From positions 372,001 to 436,000 of the forward strand of contig NW_026920935.1 in the NCBI RefSeq assembly GCF_032062105.1: DNA of 64,000 bases. Direction: 5' to 3'. Numbering within the stretch: the stretch's first letter is position 1; each line of letters begins with the position of its first letter. The translations under genes and the position numbers were made by a program. The notes beneath the pieces were generated by a model. It searched no databases, was not told the DNA's origin, and saw only the letters and a list, made by a program, of their open reading frames with translations. The DNA is from Saccostrea cucullata (lineage: Eukaryota). Positions 43 through 11,584 of this stretch are shown here, piece after piece.

Positions 43-3000
43 CTCCGGATCTGTTGTATCGATCCCCACACTCTGGGTCAGAGTCTTATTTTTATCCGCC
101 AGTCCCTCTGTCTCCTCAGCCAGGAGAAATCGCAGAAGTCGCTTCATGCTGACCCTGGCGGTGATGAAGGTCGTACAGAAGAGAGTAAACAGAGCCATGG
201 GGAGGGTCAGAATGTTAAACAAGGCTAGAGTAGACAAAGCCTTCCCCACATCTAACGGACTATCCTCCAGCTTTGGATACAAAATAAAAGTCTGCAAAGG
301 AGAAATATCAGGCATCAAACTTAGTTTAATTTTAAAATCAGGTTAGAAAATGCTACATGCAAGATATTTATTCTACATCTTTAAATTAACAGCAAAGTTT
401 GAATGTGAATGGCCTTATGATTCTGAAGGAGTTGAAATAAGGAAAGTTTAATCACAACAAATAATACAATACATATGAATGGCTCACTTGAACATTTGTC
501 TCATTTGAGCTAAAATGTTTTAAAAATGTACATAAAATATTGCACTAAAAATTTAGCACTATCTTCCTAATCAACTGATTTGTGTTATCATGAATTAGTG
601 CATTTAAAGCCCAGCCATTATCTGTACTATTTATTACAATCAAATATCAACATGTATTTATACTAAAAAGCAAAAGTAGAGCTAAAATGATAATGAATGA
701 AAATAGGTTCCCATTCCAAATAATCTCTGAAAATCATGAAATTGTGTCATACATACCACCATGGTTCCTATGGTTGGAACAGCAACAAGAATGAATGCTG
801 CAGAAAGAAAAGGGTTCTTTGTTAATATTATCATCTTTACTCATCTTCACTGTTGTAAGATATGTAATGTCTAATTTTTTTTTCATTCTTTTTCTTTCAA
901 TTTTGTATTATTCTTTCAATATTTGATTTACTCTATTTTATGGTTATCACAAGTTTTCTCCCTTGTTACAGAACATGACAGAATTTTTATTTTAAAATGC
1001 CTGTGTATACATACTGAAAAGAATTCTGAAAATACTGTTGATAAAGAGTACTTTCAATTCCTTCTTCCTCGATGCTTCAATTTCATGCCTAAAAAAATAC
1101 TCCCAGGCCAACAGTTTGATGACCTTTATGCCCTGAATGGCCTCATTACACTTTTTGACCCTCTTGTCAGATTGTGCCTAAAAATGATGAGAAAAAAAAA
1201 ACATATATGAGGGTTGTCCAAAAATTTTGTGGACAAATGCTTAATTCTCTACATAAACTCTGCAATAGCAAAAGTGTACGGTAATTTCTTAATATAGACC
1301 ATTATTTAGTACATATACAAAAATTCAAAAACACTATATCATGAACATTATAGGTATAAATACTTTGTATATATGCAAGCCGCACGGGCCAGTCTGACGC
1401 AACGCTAATTAACATGTTAACATCAAAAATATGGATTTGAATTTTTATCACATTCATGGACACACCTTAATTTTCTTTATTATGCCAGACTGCCAATTGT
1501 GTGCAATAATATTTATGTTTAGACCATCATTGATTTGATTTTTAAAATTAAAAACAATAAACATGATAATTTAAGAGCACAATCAATATAAGCACTCGTA
1601 TACACAGGCTGCACAGCCCAGTCCGACGGCGCTAGATTTATAACAAGGTCATGAATAAGGATATCCTCTTTTCATCAAATAACAGTGATTTTCCACTTCT
1701 TGTAGTGTCTCCAAAATTTTACACATCGCTGAAAAATCGTATTTACAAATTACAAATCAACAGACTAAATATATTCCAATAATTTTAAGCTGTCTGTATG
1801 AGTATATTGTGTCTGATGTCGTTTCAACCATATTAAACCATTATTGTAGGATTAGACCTGTCCCGTTCGAATGGCCGACGTCGCTTTTTTTGTCAATTTT
1901 TGAAACGTACTTCTTGCGGTTTTCGATTAAATTCTCACTGTCCATTTAGTAAGCAATACTTAAAGTGTCAGAAAATGTTGGTAATCGATTTATTTATTTA
2001 AGATTTGTCTCGTTTTTTAAAGAAAATTATCAATAAAATCACAACACTTTATTTAAAAGTTTATGGCATTTTAACCCTGGTCCGTGCCCATTATTGGCGA
2101 CCTTTAATAACCGCAATTTTTGCCAAAATATTAAGTTCAAACAAAAAAATCAAAACTATTCGGACTTGGATTTTCATAACTAACATTTTGGTATACAATA
2201 AGTATATCTTAAACCATTAATTTTGACAAAAAAGCCACCGTCCACGAACGTTTTGGACAACCCTCGTATATTATACACATGTATATTATTTTTAATACAC
2301 ATGTAATCTTCAATATGAGCAACACCTATAAGTATTACATTTTGTTTATGTAAACAGATGATTGAGGGGTATGCAGTTTAGAAAATAGAACTGCCCTCAC
2401 AGATTTACAATTGACTACGTATTATTTTTTAACTTCAGACAAAGCATGTCTAACTTTATCTAAATGTGATGTAAATTCTTTATCTTCCTGTTAATATCTT
2501 TGAGGTTTAGCTTCCTGGTTGTATAGAGAAGGAAGTGATTTATGATAAAGTATTTCTATAAATATGGGCTTACCATGACTTTTTTCTGCATATTAGACAT
2601 GCCTCGGCCCACCAGATATTGGAGTGGTCCAGACATCACCACCACTGACCCCCCAATCAGAGCCGTCCAGCCCATCTTCATGTACATCAACACCAGCGCT
2701 ATCACGATCTAAAATGTTAGAAAACATGCATTACTCTTCAATACCCAGCTGAAATATTAAAGGGCAGACACCTGCCACATAATACTTTGCTTGAATATTA
2801 CCAGTATTGCAAGTCATGCAAACAGAACAAATTTCTAAAATTATGGTGAAAGTTAAATTCTGTTAACTGAGGACGTTGAATTGTCTTACCGTCAGTGGCA
2901 CGCTCCAGATGTAGTGAATGAAGAAGAAGAGCATCATCATGTTGGTGGCATCCTGGGACATGTGGTTGATGATCTGTCCCATTGTCATCTTCCCTGAGTT

Positions 3001-6000
3001 AATCACCAGCCCAGACAGACGCAGTCCCTTGTTATACACCATTGCCTGTGTTCAAAGAGATTAACTAGGCTTTATTATTTCTATTACAGTCAAACCTTAT
3101 TATCTCAAAATTGTACCTTTCCATAGTACTTTCACTTTATATGGATTCATCAAAATAGTACAGCATTAGGAAATTTTCTTTAAAGATTCAAATTAAGAAA
3201 TTAGATTAATGAACATTTTTGCAATATTTTTTGCAATAAATGAATGTATTTGCTTGCAATTTAAAAATATGTAACAAGATACAGTTACCACTTTTAAAAG
3301 GCAGTATATAGGTAGACTGCAAAGTATTCACAGTGTGATAAATATAGTGATCAGTCTTAAATAACTTGATCAGAAACATAAATGAGATAGATGTGTGCTC
3401 CTCAAGTGTATCTTCATACCATTATGAGACGACAAAAAAGTCAACATATACAACCTGATAGTCAAAATAGCAAGTAAGGTAGGAAGCATCCCCCAAAACA
3501 TATTTGTGAAATCTAAAGTTAACTTTACACAGATGAATATGTTCCATTCACCTAAATCTAGGTCAATGTCAAGGTCATCTCTGTGTTTCTATTAAGAATA
3601 TCTTAATTGTCCTAGTTTTCCCAGTTGTGAACATTTCAGATTCTGCTCTAAATAATTCACTACAGAAAAGCCAAACTAAACTGTCGAGTTTGATTAATTA
3701 AGGCATGTTACAACCAATCTATAGACTGTGTTTTGGATTACAGTATAGCTAAATCTACTCTATATGCAAAATTGCAGAAGAAAAAATAAGATAGAAAATG
3801 ATAGCCACAGAAAATACATGTATAATTCAGATCTACATGTAGATAAAAAGGACTCAAAGATTATCATATTCTGTAACCACAAAAAAAAAAATAAGTAGTA
3901 TGCACCACAGCAAGCCCCACATGATTTAAGTGCTCTCCTGAGATGATCCACTGAATGAGTGAAAAACTTAAAAGAAATTAATCTTCTAACACATTACTCA
4001 GACCCTGTGACATTATTTGTGTGTGACCTATTACAGTGTCAGAGTTTTTGATAGATCTGATAACCCAACGAAGTGCATCAAGCATTAAATAACATTCTGT
4101 GAAGTATTCAAAAATTTAAATAATAATAAATAATAATGTTGCTTGTATAAAAATACATGACCATGCAATACATGTACATATATTATGTCAATGGGAGTGC
4201 CAATATTTTTTTTAACTAAAGATACACAATTGTTATTTAGGCAAGGCAAAATATTATTCATGCATATATATTTATCCCAGTAAATATTCCATATTAAAGT
4301 TTTCTTTATTTAGGTTATACTGCTCACCATTCAACTGAGATAACTACTGGTGACCAATGAAAAAAGACAAAGTCATTGATCAATACTAAATAATTATACA
4401 CAAACAGATTTCTGTGAAACAATTTATTACTACATTAGACCAAAGTGGCAATATATGGTACCACGAAATGCTATCAATCATTTCTACAACATTTTAACTT
4501 ACGTACTTTTCTGATTCATCACTTATGTTAGAAAGACATTGATCACATATTTTAAGGCCTAGAAAAAAAATATGTTTGTTTCCACTTTCAGGCTGAAAAA
4601 ATATAGGGTAGGTAGGTAGGCAATTTTTTTTTTTTTGAAAAAATTTTTTTTTGCTTCTTTAATCAAATCATGTATAGAAGTAACATTAATGACAAAAGAA
4701 ATGGTGTTTTCAAGCATTACTGTGACTTAACTTATAATAGAAAGGTGACCCAAACTTCTTTCTGTCTTGAAAAGTTTGCAAAGTTGGAGGCTATAATTCC
4801 CTGGTTGAAATCTTGCACATCATGGGACAAAAGCATTAAAAAAATATTTAGGGTCGGCACTATAAATTAGGGTCGGTCGGGAAAGCGGAAACAAACATAT
4901 TTTTTTTCTAGGCCTAATGGATTTTTTTCTGGTGTTGATTTTGTATTTGATCTTTGAACTTTTAACTCTTAATGACCATAAAAATTTCATTAAATTTATA
5001 TAGAGAAAATTTGAGGCAGACACTACATTTCCAAAAACATGGCTGAAACCTAACTGTACTTTATAGTACATATACCCTACAGAATTAATCCATATGTAAA
5101 TAGAAGATGCTTCTGAATCTTATCAGCATTTAATGTTTTTTTTCTGATGTTGATTTTGTATTTGATCTATGACCTTTGAACTTTCAGACCCTCCTAATGA
5201 CCTTGTTAAGAAATCAATCCCTGATTATTCCTTCATACTTACAATACACCTCCCAAAACATGGGTGAAATATACACTACTTAGCACCATATACCCTACAC
5301 AATGAATCCATATGTAAATGCAAGATGCGTCTGAATATTTTATTTAGATCTTATCAGCACTTATCTAATTCTAGCTAAGAATTTGAGTTTGCTTTTTCTT
5401 TGCTTTATTTTGGCAATTATATCAGAAATACAACATTTTAGAGTTTTCTTTTAGGAATCAAGCAGTGCTCTAATTAGAAAGCGTACCTGTACAGCCACTT
5501 TCAAACTGGCCCCCGTATTTAATGAAATAAATCCATAGAACTGATGACATGCAGCTTGTATTGTGGTTGTTAGTATGAGCACCACAGCTACCACATAACC
5601 ATTGGAGAAAAAATCCGCAACAGTAATGTATCTAGCATGCATGGTCTGCAAGGCAAAAAAATACAATATAAAACAACGACACTTAGTGCAGGTGTACCTG
5701 AATGGAGGCCCTCAGTTTAGCAGCCTCTAATATGACAAGGTAGTGGTGCTGCTGCCACAAGCTGTTCTGTATTACGGTGAGGATCAGTAGCCCAGCGGCC
5801 AGAACATACCCATTAGAAAAGAATTCACTGGCAGTTACATAACTATTAACGTCCTGAAAGGCAATCAATAATTTAGTCATGTTATGATATATTGTTGTGC
5901 TTCTTTTCCATGTATGTTGTTGAAGTGACTTGAGTAATAGGGCAATGTTAACTTAATAAAACTGACTTTCTTAAATACACAGGTGAACAACATTGAATAA

Positions 6001-9000
6001 CATTGAAAAGTGAAAAAAAATTATACATTGTAACTTTTATCAAGTATGTCATAAAAATTGCATAGCTGGGTGGGAAATCTCCAAATTTTAATATTTGCCA
6101 CATTTTCTTATAAATGATAATCACATTACCATATTTAGAGGTGTCGTCATGACAACAGATTGGTTGCCATTGGAAGCTGAGGAGATATTGTACAGGACCA
6201 CAGTCTGGGAGATGTTAGAGACAGCTGAGCTGCCATTGGTTAGATGGCTGTCCTCTTTGAGTTTCACTTGTTCATATGCATAATTTATAATCAGCTCAAT
6301 GCACCAAGGTCCAACAAATTGGATGATGTCTCCGAAAAAACGCAGAAAGCCGGCCAAACATAGATTCTTCCAGAAGACTCGCAGGTACACCTTGTGGAAA
6401 TTGAGTTTTTTGCCATTTCTCTGACTTTTGTCCTACAAAGAGGAGAAACAGATTCAGATCTGTAGTAAATATCCCTTGCTTTTAGGCAAAACATGGGGGA
6501 AAAGTTACACAAAGTCTTCTAATTTTTTGGTAATTTATGTGTTGAAATTCAATTAACTTTAGAGTAAGTTAAAATCTCAGAATGTTTTTTTTTATCAGAC
6601 AAAATATACATGTAAATGTTAGGTAAATGAGCTACAGAATTATGACTTTGTTCAAGCTGATTACAGAAGACTTACCAATTCATCCTCAAATACAGCCTTA
6701 AATCTTCTATACACAGACTCCACTTGTATGTCCTGCAAATGTATATAGATATTTCAAAGACTTCACAATTTTCATTTAATAAATCAAAAATATTTTGAAT
6801 TATTGATGGAGATTTTTTTTCCATTTTCATGATTTTATAAACTTTATGACATTTAAATGATTTAGATAGCATACAAATGTATAAGACACATACTATACAA
6901 GCAAGCAAATTAAGGACTGTGGCTTTTGTTAATCATGATTAATAATGTTTAAAAAACTGTAGAATAAATAAAAAATCCTGATACACTGCATATCTCAAGT
7001 TTTTGGCAAAGTAAAGTGGAAACTGGAAGAATAAATAGAGAAATTACTGGTATACAGATCCATTTGCACATTTTTCATGATTTAGATGACACCATTTACT
7101 AGTGGAGACCAGACTGCATATTTAGACCTCTATTTGGCACTTATGGCCTTTGAGCAGTGAGGAATTTTTTATGCCAGCATCTAAGTACCCTGAAAAAGTC
7201 TCAAACAAAGGACTGGTTTCTGCATCCCACAGTGGAAATCAAAGCTACAATGTAAGGATTAACTCCATACACACAACTCTAGGGAAAATGTACCACCCAC
7301 TGCACCATGTGGGCAACAAGTTTTATTTCACAATCATATTGATGCTATTTTTGGAAAAAAATCTGTTTTTTGCTAGGACTTCTTTCTTGTTTTACTTGGG
7401 GATTACAATATCTGGTATGGGGTCATATGAATATCAATATTGTTACAGCAAAAAACACCTTGACCTGACATTACTATTAGAAAGTGTACAATGACTTTTT
7501 TATAATTGATATGAGATAAACACTGCCTGTATTATGCATTAACAATTACATGTATATCAGCTAGTCTTCACGAGAAAACTTGTGTTCCATCATTATCAGT
7601 CACTGCTCTCTACCTTACGTGTAAGTGGACAGACTTTTAAGTCATCACTCATATCTCCACTGGACTCTGATGGAGTCAATCATTCAAAGACTCAGGAGAC
7701 CCAGTTCCATTTCAATATTGACCTAATTTACTGATCTGGTTGACCTATTAACTATACAGTTGACATGTACCTATTAGACCTGACTTTGTTGGATACATTG
7801 ACAAAATGTGTCTGTCAGCCTAAAAATTCTTCTGTCAAAAAATCTATTTTGTTTTCTCAAGAAATTAGAATTGTTTGCTGATCATCTTAAACCAAATTTA
7901 TGACTATGTAATGGGAAAGGAGAAAATGCAGTGGACCAGACAGGGATTCGAACCCAGGCCTTCAGGTCAGGTGCTCTACCAAATGAGCTATCTGGCCACC
8001 AGCGATCGAACCCAGCTGACCGCCACAACTGAAAAAGTTTTTCAAATATGGAATTAATTTTCTTTCATTAAGATTTAATCTCATTAACTTGATGAAATTA
8101 TTTAAAATAAAAGCAATTAACAAAATAGCTGGAAATTAAAAGGATTTAATTTTCCTTTACTTTATATGAAGTATGGTGTTCATGGTGTTAAACTTTAATT
8201 CACACAACTATGTGATTTAATTGTAAGTTGCAAATAAAGGTTTCTAAACTTATATACCTTATTTTAAAACTATCAAAAATCATGACAAAATTGTATAGTA
8301 ATCATATATGATATATATTGTGTGGTTCATTTGGATTTTGTTTTATCAAATTCACTTGTATTATAAGCTTATGGGGTATAGGACAATACATGTGCTAGAC
8401 GTGTATCATATTCATGGAGAATTTTTTTGTTTGTATGTTCAACATCTTGAACCAGATTTTCACTCATATGGAGATGCTACCATTTGCAATTTTGTGCTAC
8501 ACTCAAGGCTATTGAGCAGTGCAGGAATCTTTTTCATCATCTGACTTCATCCTGCAATATAAGGATCAACTCCTTACTCCGCAACTCTAGTCTAGAGCAG
8601 TCTTCAAAGAGTGCATTTGTCATAATTTTCTGCTATCATGTTACTGTTGAAAGTTATATACCAGAAACATACACAAGGTAGCTTCAATATTTGTTTAAAA
8701 AAATTCTTAAAGACAAAATTGATAAAACTATTCATTTATCTAGAAATCCGATACATCTCTGTCAGAACTATTTACTAATTTAATATTAATTATCAAATCT
8801 TTCTCTCTTTTTAACATTTGAATTTACTTGTATCAAAAAGTAACAATCAATGGGCAAAGGTAATCATCATATTATGATAAAAGAATTTGATATCCACTAT
8901 CCCATAACACCAACATAGTCAATCATTAATCCATAAAATCTATAGTCAGAATGATTTGCTATTTTTATTATATTTATGATAAAAAGGCATAATTGATAAA

Positions 9001-11584
9001 TTTACTTTATTATTTTTTTTTTGTACAATAGTAATCTGATGACCATGATTTTATTATACATACACATATACATATACAGAGAAATTACACATTAGTCACA
9101 TTTTTTAACTTAGATAAGAGTACAGATCAATTGTAAAAGGTTAAAGATCAGTCTTGACTTACACTTAAGTAAATGGCTAAATGTCCTCTTTTTTGGTACC
9201 ATCTATCTAGATATTTCATTTGTTTAAAGCCAATCCTTAGTTAACTCTATCTATCAGATGTTTCCTTCGAAAATGTTACACCTCAAATTCCTTTTCTGAT
9301 AAAATTTAAATCATATATATATTTTTATAAAGTTTGGGATTCAATCAAGACTTTCAAAAATTTTATTGTAATAGTATTTATTTAGGTTTTCCACACTTGT
9401 GTGATATGTCTCTGAATCAACCTTTTTTAAAAGTCCTGCACCTGTATATCCTATAAGTCCTAAATAATAACCTATTGATTATGTCAATCCCTCTTGAGGG
9501 CAGGTCAACCTTATCAATGAAAGAGTGCATTACAACCTTCAATAGTGAAAGGACATGTTAACTTGATATTGTGGTCAGCTCTACTTCAATGGATTTTATT
9601 TGTTCAAACAGCAGATTGAACTCAATACACTGACATGGTCTACATTAAGTTTCTACCACCTGATTTAGTTAACCAAGTTATTACACATTGGAGATTTCAT
9701 ATCATCATTCCTCTCTGGATTAAGTTCCCTATTTACCTTACATGAATATTGACAAGGATATATATTATAATTAGCATACAACAAATGTGAAATGGACCTC
9801 ATTTATCTGCCCTGATAACTCAACTGACCAACCAAAGACAGATGTAAATCTTGTTGGGTTTTTGTTTGAATTATTTACCGAACACTCGATTTTGTCACCC
9901 CATTTCCTATCTCACTCCTCTACGACTGACAACCCTAATCACGCTAATAAAAGCATGTAAATGTGTATTACACACAAACACAACACTATGGCATGTACAG
10001 AACATGCTGAATGTAATTTACAATTCAAACAACAATTCAGCATTCTAATTGTTCTCAAACATGATTGTTAAATACAATTTTTGCAGCATTTTGTTCAAGC
10101 AAGTAAAATAAAAGTCTCACTACACCAATACTATATCAAAATATAGAATTATTATTAATTCAAAGACAAACTGTCAGGAATTTACAGCTTTGCAAAAATG
10201 AGCTAATGAATAAATCCCCATTTTGATTTTACAAGTTGGCATGCATGTCAATTTACAGCATGGAATTTTAGTCTCTTTTGGTTTTCAACAAAACACATAA
10301 ATACAAAATTATGACCCTTAATAAATTAATCAATACAACATGTTTAATAGATATTTAATTCAATTTTCGACATCAGTAGCTCTCAACATGTGCATGATGT
10401 GCATGTGAAATACTAACTATGCTATTTTATTTGTCTCTAATAATTATCTTGTTTTCTGTGCATTTTTTTTTTATTTCATCTGGAATGATGATAATATTTA
10501 CAGAGTTGATTATATAGAAAAATAGGAACTGTTCGATGACAAAAGCGATAAAAAGTGTAACTTCAAACCTTTGGTAAATGTCCAAGGTCTTCCTGCTCAT
10601 AGGGTTTCTTAAAACCATCTGAAAGGAATCCATTTAGCCACCAAAATGTTACTTTGGATAGAAAGTTCACATGCTTGAATACAAATTTGCTTTCTCCAAG
10701 ATCAGGTGGGGTTTTTGCTGGCACTGGATTTTTGAAGAAGGCATATTTCTGTTGTAAAAATTTAAATTATTTTAAACCATTGTCATCATAATTATACAAT
10801 TTATAGCAATAAGACAGTCCATTTCAAAATTATTTTAATAAATTGTTCTTCTCAAGTAACAAACTTCGATCATTATAAATTATATGTACCAGTATAGCTG
10901 TACTGGTATATACTATTTACACATTAATTTAGTAGGAATTCAGAATTTAAAGGGACAAATTTAATTTGTCTTTAAATGACCTTTAGCCTACTGCTCTACT
11001 TTTCACTTCAACATGTTCAATCTTACCTGGACTCTTAGTAAATTAAGTTCAACCGTCAGTAATATCACATAGAATGCCACATCAATCCAAGTTAACCACA
11101 CTCTCACATGGGCTACAGATATACCATTTTTGTGCAATGAAACACCCTTCAATATTTTTATTGGTAACACCGACATCCAATATGCCAAGATTATAAGTAA
11201 AAATCTTGGAGAATTCCACTGTTCTATGTTATGGTAGAATACAAGAGTCAATATAGTTGCTACAAAGGCAATGATCGGTGGTATGAAGACATGGTAATTT
11301 ACAGTGTCAGGATCTTGGGAATCTGACATAAACCCTTCTGCAATTTCGGTGCCAATTATGATAACCAAAGCAAGTGAAAAAAGCCATCTTACATTGTGCC
11401 CCTTGAAATGTACCCATGTTGTTGCATTGTAGTACTTAGACTTGCACCACACAATCAATATAAACAAACTGACAAGCAAAAATATTGCATGTGGCACAAT
11501 GTTAAGAACATCCACAAAGCATTCATTCTTCACAACACCCTCTGCAACACTTCTAGCTTTGTTTTTAGATCCACAAAAAGACAT
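43..11584 (-). CDS. ABCC9: ABC transporter C family, sulfonylurea-receptor (ABCC8/ABCC9)-like; 5' portion (TMD0, L0, TMD1); continues beyond window start
   Basis: Exons (- strand, all GT-AG, phases consistent): 11584-11027 (MSFCGSK...NLLRVQ, TMD0), 10748-10569 (KYAFFK...FLSKVTFWWLN...DLGHLPK, L0), 6732-6676, 6432-6130, [5853-5698 or 5645-5487], 3045-2890 (AMVYNKGLRLS...GQIINHMSQD), 2708-2574, 1177-1015 (SDKRVKKCNEAIQGIKVIKLLAWE), 797-757, 291-43 (ALSTLALFNILTLP...VSMKRLLRFL). The N-terminal FCG and these motifs match SUR1/SUR2. ABCC8 versus ABCC9 cannot be resolved for an invertebrate. Confidence 0.92.
1208..2266. mobile_element. Non-autonomous Tc1/mariner-type element in SUR intron
   Basis: Imperfect ~27-bp TIR (T/C)GAGGGTTGTCCAAAA..TT.GTGGAC at both ends, flanked by TA (1206-1207, 2267-2268); no transposase ORF. 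Confidence 0.85.
4556..4914. mobile_element. MITE with GGCC termini and TAA TSD (PIF/Harbinger- or Zator-type)
   Basis: TIR GGCCTAGAAAAAAAATATGTTTGTTTCC, TSD TAA at 4553-4555 and 4915-4917; internal GGTAGGTAGG/GGTCGGTCGG motifs. Confidence 0.85.
4922..5359. repeat. Diverged two-copy tandem duplication, ~215-bp unit
   Basis: TTTTTCTG.TGTTGATTTTGTATTTGATCT...CCAAAACATGG.TGAAA...CATATACCCTACA...AATCCATATGTAAAT...TCTTATCAGCA occurs at ~4922-5128 and ~5137-5359. Confidence 0.75.
5487..5645 (-). CDS. SUR-like alternative exon B (159 nt, phase 0-0, paralog of exon A)
   Basis: ttgcag|ACC...CAG|gtacgc; TMHARYITVADFFSNGYVVAVVLILTTTIQAACHQFYGFISLNTGASLKVAVQ; colinear with exon A. Confidence 0.85.
5698..5853 (-). 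CDS. SUR-like alternative exon A (156 nt, phase 0-0, TM7 region)
   Basis: ttcag|GAC...CAG|gtacac; DVNSYVTASEFFSNGYVLAAGLLILTVIQNSLWQQHHYLVILEAAKLRASIQ. Confidence 0.88.
7932..8030 (-). repeat. tRNA-derived sequence (SINE head or tRNA pseudogene)
   Basis: Minus strand GGCCAGA TAGCTCATTTGGTAGAGC ... CTGGGTTCGAATCCCTG TCTGGTCC: A box, B box, acceptor-, D- and T-stems present; anticodon arm truncated. Confidence 0.65.

Follow-up and report, generated by a model that had tools for sequence, protein, structure and literature searches.

The locus examined here raises two linked questions: whether an oyster gene carries two interchangeable versions of one membrane-spanning helix and, if it does, what keeps both versions out of the same mRNA. 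An earlier note on this DNA had proposed that tandem-duplicated, mutually exclusive exons swap the seventh transmembrane segment (TM7) of a SUR-like transporter. We address this proposal in the window, by which we mean the whole 64,000-nucleotide stretch of Saccostrea DNA that was analysed, and in RNA contigs, in the isoforms of other oysters, and in the corresponding gene of mussels and other molluscs. All positions given without a contig name are those of the window.

The first coding exon of the gene encodes a SUR-type TMD0 (11030..11584, minus strand; the ATG is at 11584, and the 3' end, which comes from tblastn, is approximate). This exon is 48% identical to Potamilus ABCC9, and its PDB matches are SUR1 and SUR2 only, with E 2.6e-37. 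Among oysters, the identity of TMD0 is 89% to Ostrea edulis and 84-86% to Crassostrea and Magallana, so the window belongs to an ostreid other than these. The window contains just the 5' third of the gene; exon-by-exon tblastn covers residues 4-1711 of the Pinctada orthologue over about 27.5 kb of contig C3072, and that orthologue scores 1192 bits against SUR1 versus 817 against ABCC2. The architecture of the SUR subfamily is present, namely TMD0-L0 followed by two TMD-NBD halves, and the protein is nearer to SUR1/SUR2 than to the MRPs. Judged by these alignments, the gene is a full-length SUR-type ABCC8/9 homologue and the only SUR-type gene of this ostreid oyster, so that the SUR-like identity proposed earlier is borne out by the TMD0 matches and the Pinctada bit scores. 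When the Pinctada orthologue is searched against the gene with tblastn, the TM7 segment alone matches twice, which makes it the sole duplicated exon. At 15570-15719, on the plus strand, an ORF with CDNCEEYL resembles the zinc-finger start of the transcription elongation factor SPT4 and belongs to a neighbouring gene.

The two copies of this segment are adjacent. Exon A occupies 5853-5698 on the minus strand (156 nt, 52 codons), with AG at 5855-5854 and GT at 5697-5696; exon B occupies 5645-5487 on the same strand (159 nt, 53 codons), with AG at 5647-5646 and GT at 5486-5485. Each has an open frame. The last codon of the upstream exon is complete at 6130 and the first codon of the downstream exon is complete from 3045, so both alternatives are phase 0-0. 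Between them lies a spacer of 52 nt (5697-5646, minus strand) with the GT..AG ends of an intron and with the motif CACTAAG at spacer positions +10 to +16 (5688-5682). The two peptides are identical at 18 of 48 positions (38% of amino acids, 67% positives, E 3e-12). They have in common an N-terminal block, Y.T..(E/D)FFSNGYV, and the final Q, and the exons have the same last three letters as well. Where exon A, which encodes a canonical-type TM7 with the motif NSLWQQHH, reads NSLWQQHHY, exon B, which encodes a divergent TM7 with the motif ACHQFYGF, reads AACHQFYGF. From the alignment, the homology of A and B is far beyond chance, and the pair is found again in other oysters. The two exons are thus adjacent, homologous, similar in length, equal in phase and intact at their splice sites, and all the coordinates and motifs that the earlier note had given for a homologous phase 0-0 pair with canonical sites are confirmed.

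The exons on either side are constitutive. The upstream exon (6130..6432, minus strand) encodes TM6 and the extracellular loop and ends with the full codon ATG at 6130; an RNA contig spans 6132-6431 of it and joins 6675. The 276-nt intron that separates it from exon A (5854..6129, minus strand) appears in RNA as a joint that skips 5855-6131, the cut being displaced because some letters are shared and one base, at 6131, is changed. The downstream exon (2890..3045, minus strand, 156 nt) starts AMVYNKGL and is 74% identical to Pinctada. Further upstream, a small coding exon at 6675-6734 is absent from the ORF lists, and an RNA contig runs from 6431 through 6675-6734 to an exon near 10570-10750. 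At 6165, one of the RNA contigs from run X1 carries GCC as an in-frame insertion that the window lacks, together with several amino-acid changes in the TM6-TM7 extracellular loop, the least conserved part of the upstream exon.

Two repetitive features lie in introns of the gene. The 2441-nt intron between exon B and the downstream exon (3046..5486, minus strand) contains, at about 4553-4919, a sequence to which numerous short and variable contigs match at high depth in each of the four runs, one of which comes from another study; it is probably an interspersed repeat that is either expressed or abundant. An element of ~1.07 kb, in appearance a non-autonomous DNA transposon, lies at 1203-2271; its terminal inverted repeats of 55 nt, at 1203-1257 and at 2217-2271, are 75% complementary.

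In order to see how A and B are used, we turn to RNA contigs from three metatranscriptomic runs of one study. Given their identity of ~96% to the window, their source is a close relative or a divergent population. Each of the three runs yields a 213-nt contig composed of 30 nt of the upstream exon, exon A, and 27 nt of the downstream exon, as well as a 216-nt contig in which exon B lies between the same flanks. This pair of contigs is a bubble of a k=31 assembly whose flank sizes are exact: the flanks measure 30 and 27 nt, the reason being that the last three letters of A and B are the same. Across the three runs, contig depth is 26.8, 34.1 and 33 for A, and 39.6, 14.4 and 29.2 for B. A and B are joined, therefore, to the same neighbours at similar depth. 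All four junctions proposed for exclusive use (6130 to 5853, 6130 to 5645, 5698 to 3045, and 5487 to 3045) are found in the contigs. Conversely, the joint between A and B (5698 to 5645), which had been predicted to be missing, occurs in none of the RNA contigs of the three runs, and the spacer is neither retained, covered nor spliced out in any of them; contigs lose rare forms, so that this missing joint is soft evidence, and double skipping lies outside what contigs show. The differences between the RNA and the window are mostly silent. In exon A all five listed differences are synonymous; in exon B two of four are, the other two being A-to-T and I-to-M; and both changes in the 27 letters of the downstream exon are synonymous.

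The same arrangement recurs in other oysters. A profile of A and B, compared with protein representatives, retrieves genomic read-through ORFs in which the two exons follow one another in tandem, and on the contigs of these ORFs the spacer is 51 nt and 58 nt. RefSeq contains A-only and B-only isoforms in Ostrea edulis (XP_055997060/XP_055997063, of which X1 is the B-type and X2 the A-type), Magallana gigas (XP_034336799/XP_034336800), Crassostrea angulata (XP_052714370/XP_052714371) and C. virginica (XP_022339096/XP_022339097). In each of these four species the A and B isoforms differ by 1 amino acid in length, and no RefSeq isoform of the four carries both A and B. Transcripts with A or B, but not both, are thus found in the three RNA runs and among the RefSeq isoforms of four oysters, and one automated model holds both. 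That model (P0211; UniRef A0A8W8JNZ9, M. gigas, 1748 aa) has A and then B in series and exceeds the RefSeq isoforms in length by 53 aa; either it is an artefact of annotation, or it hints at double inclusion as a rare event.

Both exons have also been maintained. Their lengths of 156 and 159 nt are kept across all oysters compared, and dN/dS is 0.15 for exon A, as against 0.22-0.38 for exon B, with dS values from 0.5 to above 1 (to saturation), so that both exons are under purifying selection in oysters. The B-specific residues are invariant in five oysters, and the A-like motif is present in other molluscs; on this comparison exon A represents the ancestral-type TM7, and exon B a divergent copy under its own purifying selection across Ostreidae. 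All the listed full-length transcript-derived proteins from public assemblies are of the A-type, which suggests that A is the major form. Neither decay of one exon in relatives nor routine splicing of the two together was seen. Exons A and B are used in a mutually exclusive manner, both are maintained, and we conclude that they are a genuine, old mutually exclusive pair in the oyster SUR-type gene. Some of this was already known: both isoforms are in RefSeq for four oysters, mutually exclusive ABCC exons have been described in Drosophila MRP, and steric exclusion is an established mechanism. Our search of the literature on mutually exclusive exons in mollusc SUR/ABCC genes found no paper describing the switch, and looking up the accessions of the RNA runs likewise gave no result.

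We now ask what enforces the exclusivity. In the five oysters the spacer measures 52, 51, 58, 58 and 59 nt (58 in M. gigas, 59 in C. virginica), and it is conserved in length but not in sequence. The intron upstream of A, by comparison, measures 276 nt here, 696 nt in M. gigas and 968 nt in C. virginica; for the intron downstream of B, the lengths in the same order are 2441, 1085 and 2286 nt. The other introns of the SUR-type gene are at least about 96 nt here, 98 nt in M. gigas and 114 nt in C. virginica, which leaves the spacer at about half the size of the next smallest. An evolutionary restriction on spacer length, as steric exclusion would lead one to expect, is thus found in five oysters. 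In vertebrates, the steric limit on the distance between donor and branch point is ~50 nt (PMC5740500, PMC7969005). In a spacer of 52 nt in total any branch point falls below this ~50-nt threshold, which is a vertebrate value and may not be the oyster's. Against the steric reading, flies and worms splice introns of a size similar to that of the spacer. As for the branch site itself, the CACTAAG motif is absent from the spacers of the O. edulis-like sequence, M. gigas and C. virginica, and we have rejected it as a candidate; in three species a run of U with an A after it is found 23-26 nt ahead of the acceptor. The steric mechanism put forward in the earlier note therefore stands as consistent with the data, and the conserved spacer of 51-59 nt strengthens it, but the branch motif named there does not survive the comparison with other oysters.

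Each mRNA runs from the upstream exon through A or B to the downstream exon. According to the steric account, given a spacer of 52 nt (51-59 nt elsewhere), the branch point would lie at most about 35 nt from the donor of exon A, and the parts of the spliceosome would probably be unable to assemble at both ends of the spacer, so that A and B could not be included together. Nonsense-mediated decay cannot enforce the exclusivity, because A and B together are in frame (315 nt). The consequence is a pair of proteins whose only difference lies in the inner half of TM7 (SUR1 365-386), a region that in SUR1 lines the central cavity and carries Y377; the protein would thus have two forms of its inner cavity. 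Taken as a whole, an old exclusive pair, kept exclusive by a short spacer and giving rise to cavity variants, is in our judgement the probable explanation of this locus, and on the question of mechanism the data fit steric exclusion by the short spacer.

The mussels allow a comparison with a pair whose spacer is long. In Mytilus galloprovincialis and M. edulis, RefSeq isoforms X1 and X2 differ only at residues 366-405. The two TM7 exon copies of M. galloprovincialis lie at 7256-7411 and 8360-8515 of locus L009, the divergent copy first, with a spacer of 948 nt; they are 62% identical. In a tree of exons, the two mussel copies group together (95/90), and the oyster B clade (99/98) is separate from the oyster A exons; this tree has 52 columns only, and its deeper forks are unsettled. 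The simplest reading is that the TM7 exons of oysters and mussels were duplicated independently. In Pinctada and Pecten we find one TM7 exon copy, and tblastn found no second copy in the locus. Two further B-like exons (P0007 and P0014) group weakly with B (85/81), one of them being a single copy on a short contig. Another sequence (P0003, 162 aa, Logan) is a genomic read-through ORF in which a full TM7-type exon is followed by ~14 residues and a near-identical partial copy from which the first 15 residues are missing. This may represent a further duplication of the TM7 exon, recent and partial, in a different animal.

The mussel pair speaks against the steric reading to the extent that, with 948 nt between its members, a short spacer is evidently unneeded for exclusivity at the TM7 position. 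It thereby supports the alternative that exclusion is real but non-steric, arising through regulated competition of the splice sites, through trans-acting factors or through pairing within the RNA, and that the short spacer is a leftover of tandem duplication. Under that alternative, one must account for a spacer kept at 51-59 nt in five oysters while its sequence and the lengths of the flanking introns changed freely, and for a spacer about half as long as any other intron of the gene. A competing RNA structure of the kind described for Dscam or Drosophila MRP was also looked for: the region 5300-6250 has only short, AT-rich, imperfect inverted repeats, among which there are no convincing complementary docking and selector pairs, and the spacer has no unusual fold, folding no better than shuffled sequences (z = +1.3). 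We therefore regard non-steric exclusion as unlikely in oysters, though it is the strongest of the alternatives to the steric account.

Whatever enforces it, the exchange of A for B affects a defined part of the protein. In HMMER alignments both exons align ungapped to SUR1 345-392, ending at Q392, so that the segment is TM7. In SUR1, Y377 sits in TM7 and contacts glibenclamide (PMC5655142, PMC6699824). In the same alignments, exon A has H at the equivalent position and exon B has G. The mapping of the segment to TM7 and to Y377 is thereby upheld, by the ungapped alignments and by the two SUR1 papers. The earlier note had gone further, placing both Y377 and I381 in the sulfonylurea pocket. For Y377 this is correct, but I381 was not found as a pocket residue in PMC5655142 or PMC6699824, and we do not retain it. 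Since Y377 is kept in neither exon, sulfonylurea binding is not to be assumed for either form.

The differences between the two types are not spread evenly along the helix. Fixed differences between the A-type and the B-type in five oysters cluster at SUR1 365-386 and are densest at 370-378, and the outer half of the TM7 helix is common to both types. We modelled TMD1 of the two natural O. edulis isoforms from an alignment of 32 sequences, and in these models the A and B segments form the same long helix, with pLDDT of about 90-95. From the SUR1 mapping, we infer that the two helices would yield different cavities, and the A and B forms probably differ in a cavity ligand or in coupling. As regards a possible Kir6-type partner channel, at least seven Kir genes are present in the genome. 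Of these, the two that match best score slightly higher against Kir3.2/Kir2.2 than against Kir6.2 (405 vs 361 bits), and they are no nearer to Kir6 than to Kir2 or Kir3. The Kir genes have long uninterrupted frames and occur in small clusters (G000:C11781:84539-84967 and 101408-101833; C19440; C13062). Thus, of the earlier claim that a splicing switch provides two ligand or substrate pockets, the switch is upheld and the two pockets stay at the level of a conjecture, with Y377 kept in neither exon and no clear Kir6 partner identified.

A second alternative grants the splicing but denies its importance: exon B would be spliced in without consequence, as a tolerated alternative helix that has no distinct role. 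The A-type identity of the listed full-length transcript-derived proteins is what one would expect in that case. The conservation of exon B is not, since its frame, length, splice sites and specific motif are kept in five oysters at a dN/dS of 0.22-0.38; nor is its contig depth, which resembles that of A in three RNA samples, nor the fact that mussels independently evolved a second version of the TM7 helix. We consider an inconsequential exon B to be improbable. The last alternative, that A and B are regularly included together so that the protein gains an extra helix, draws on their joint frame of 315 nt and on the one automated M. gigas model with both, and it is very improbable in view of contigs that lack an A-B joint despite similar depths and that lead from each exon directly into the downstream exon, of RefSeq isoforms that in four species never contain both, and of the extra membrane pass, which would be expected to invert everything downstream.

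With an old exclusive pair, a short spacer and two cavity variants as the preferred reading, we may consider what the oyster and mussel cases could mean jointly. Oysters and mussels may have independently evolved a splicing switch in a helix that lines the cavity of their sole SUR-type protein, the helix being the same in both groups and the conserved LLQ-HH stretch being replaced in each case. If the switch is adaptive, the two forms would differ in ligand, substrate or channel coupling and would be deployed according to tissue or stress, and in oysters an intron too short to be spliced would hard-wire the switch. We offer this extended reading tentatively, as a possibility that we hold with less confidence than the explanation of the oyster pair itself.

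The features of greatest interest are the conserved, tiny spacer and the convergent case in mussels. The exon pair is a clean, conserved case in which to test how short introns block splicing in molluscs. Moreover, A and B provide two naturally occurring SUR-type proteins whose one difference is the helix that in mammals bears a drug-contact residue, and independent duplication in oysters and mussels points to this TM7 helix as a site of functional tuning. There is a practical implication as well: automated annotation may merge A and B, as in one M. gigas model, or omit exon B.

Several known systems resemble the one described here. In the account given in PMC7969005, which cites Smith and Nadal-Ginard 1989, exons 2 and 3 of alpha-tropomyosin and exons 4a and 4b of OGDH are subject to steric exclusion with a conserved restriction on intron size. 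Like the oyster pair, these consist of two homologous exons; a branch point necessarily too near the upstream donor characterises them and would do so in the oyster. In those cases, however, the block is due to a distant branch point in a longer intron, whereas in the oyster the whole intron is 52 nt, and the vertebrate threshold may not be the molluscan one. Drosophila MRP has clusters of mutually exclusive exons with 2 and 8 variants (PMC4588896), and the earlier note was right to cite it as a precedent. It, too, is an ABCC-family gene that varies its transmembrane segments by mutually exclusive exons, but it is ABCC1-like, of the MRP and not the SUR subfamily, it belongs to another phylum, it has larger clusters, of a kind for which competing RNA structures are discussed, and its origin is independent. 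Within oysters, exon 10 of the C. virginica alternative oxidase is likewise a tandem duplicated exon that gives two protein variants by alternative splicing (PMC5589949), although that is a terminal exon of a different gene, selected via an alternative 3' site, and not a steric internal pair.

The nearest relatives of the Saccostrea pair are the ABCC8/9-like isoform pairs of other oysters in RefSeq. These come from the same gene (the orthologue) and have the same exon types, in the same order, with 52 and 53 aa and a spacer of 51-59 nt. They differ in belonging to other species, with a TMD0 identity of 84-89%, and in being automated models for which we found neither a published description nor a proposed mechanism. 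The Mytilus X1/X2 pair is alike in that it, too, consists of alternatively used copies of the TM7 exon, which again differ in the stretch equivalent to SUR1 370-378, but unlike in its independent duplication, in its upstream placement of the divergent copy, in the 62% identity of its two copies and in its 948-nt spacer.
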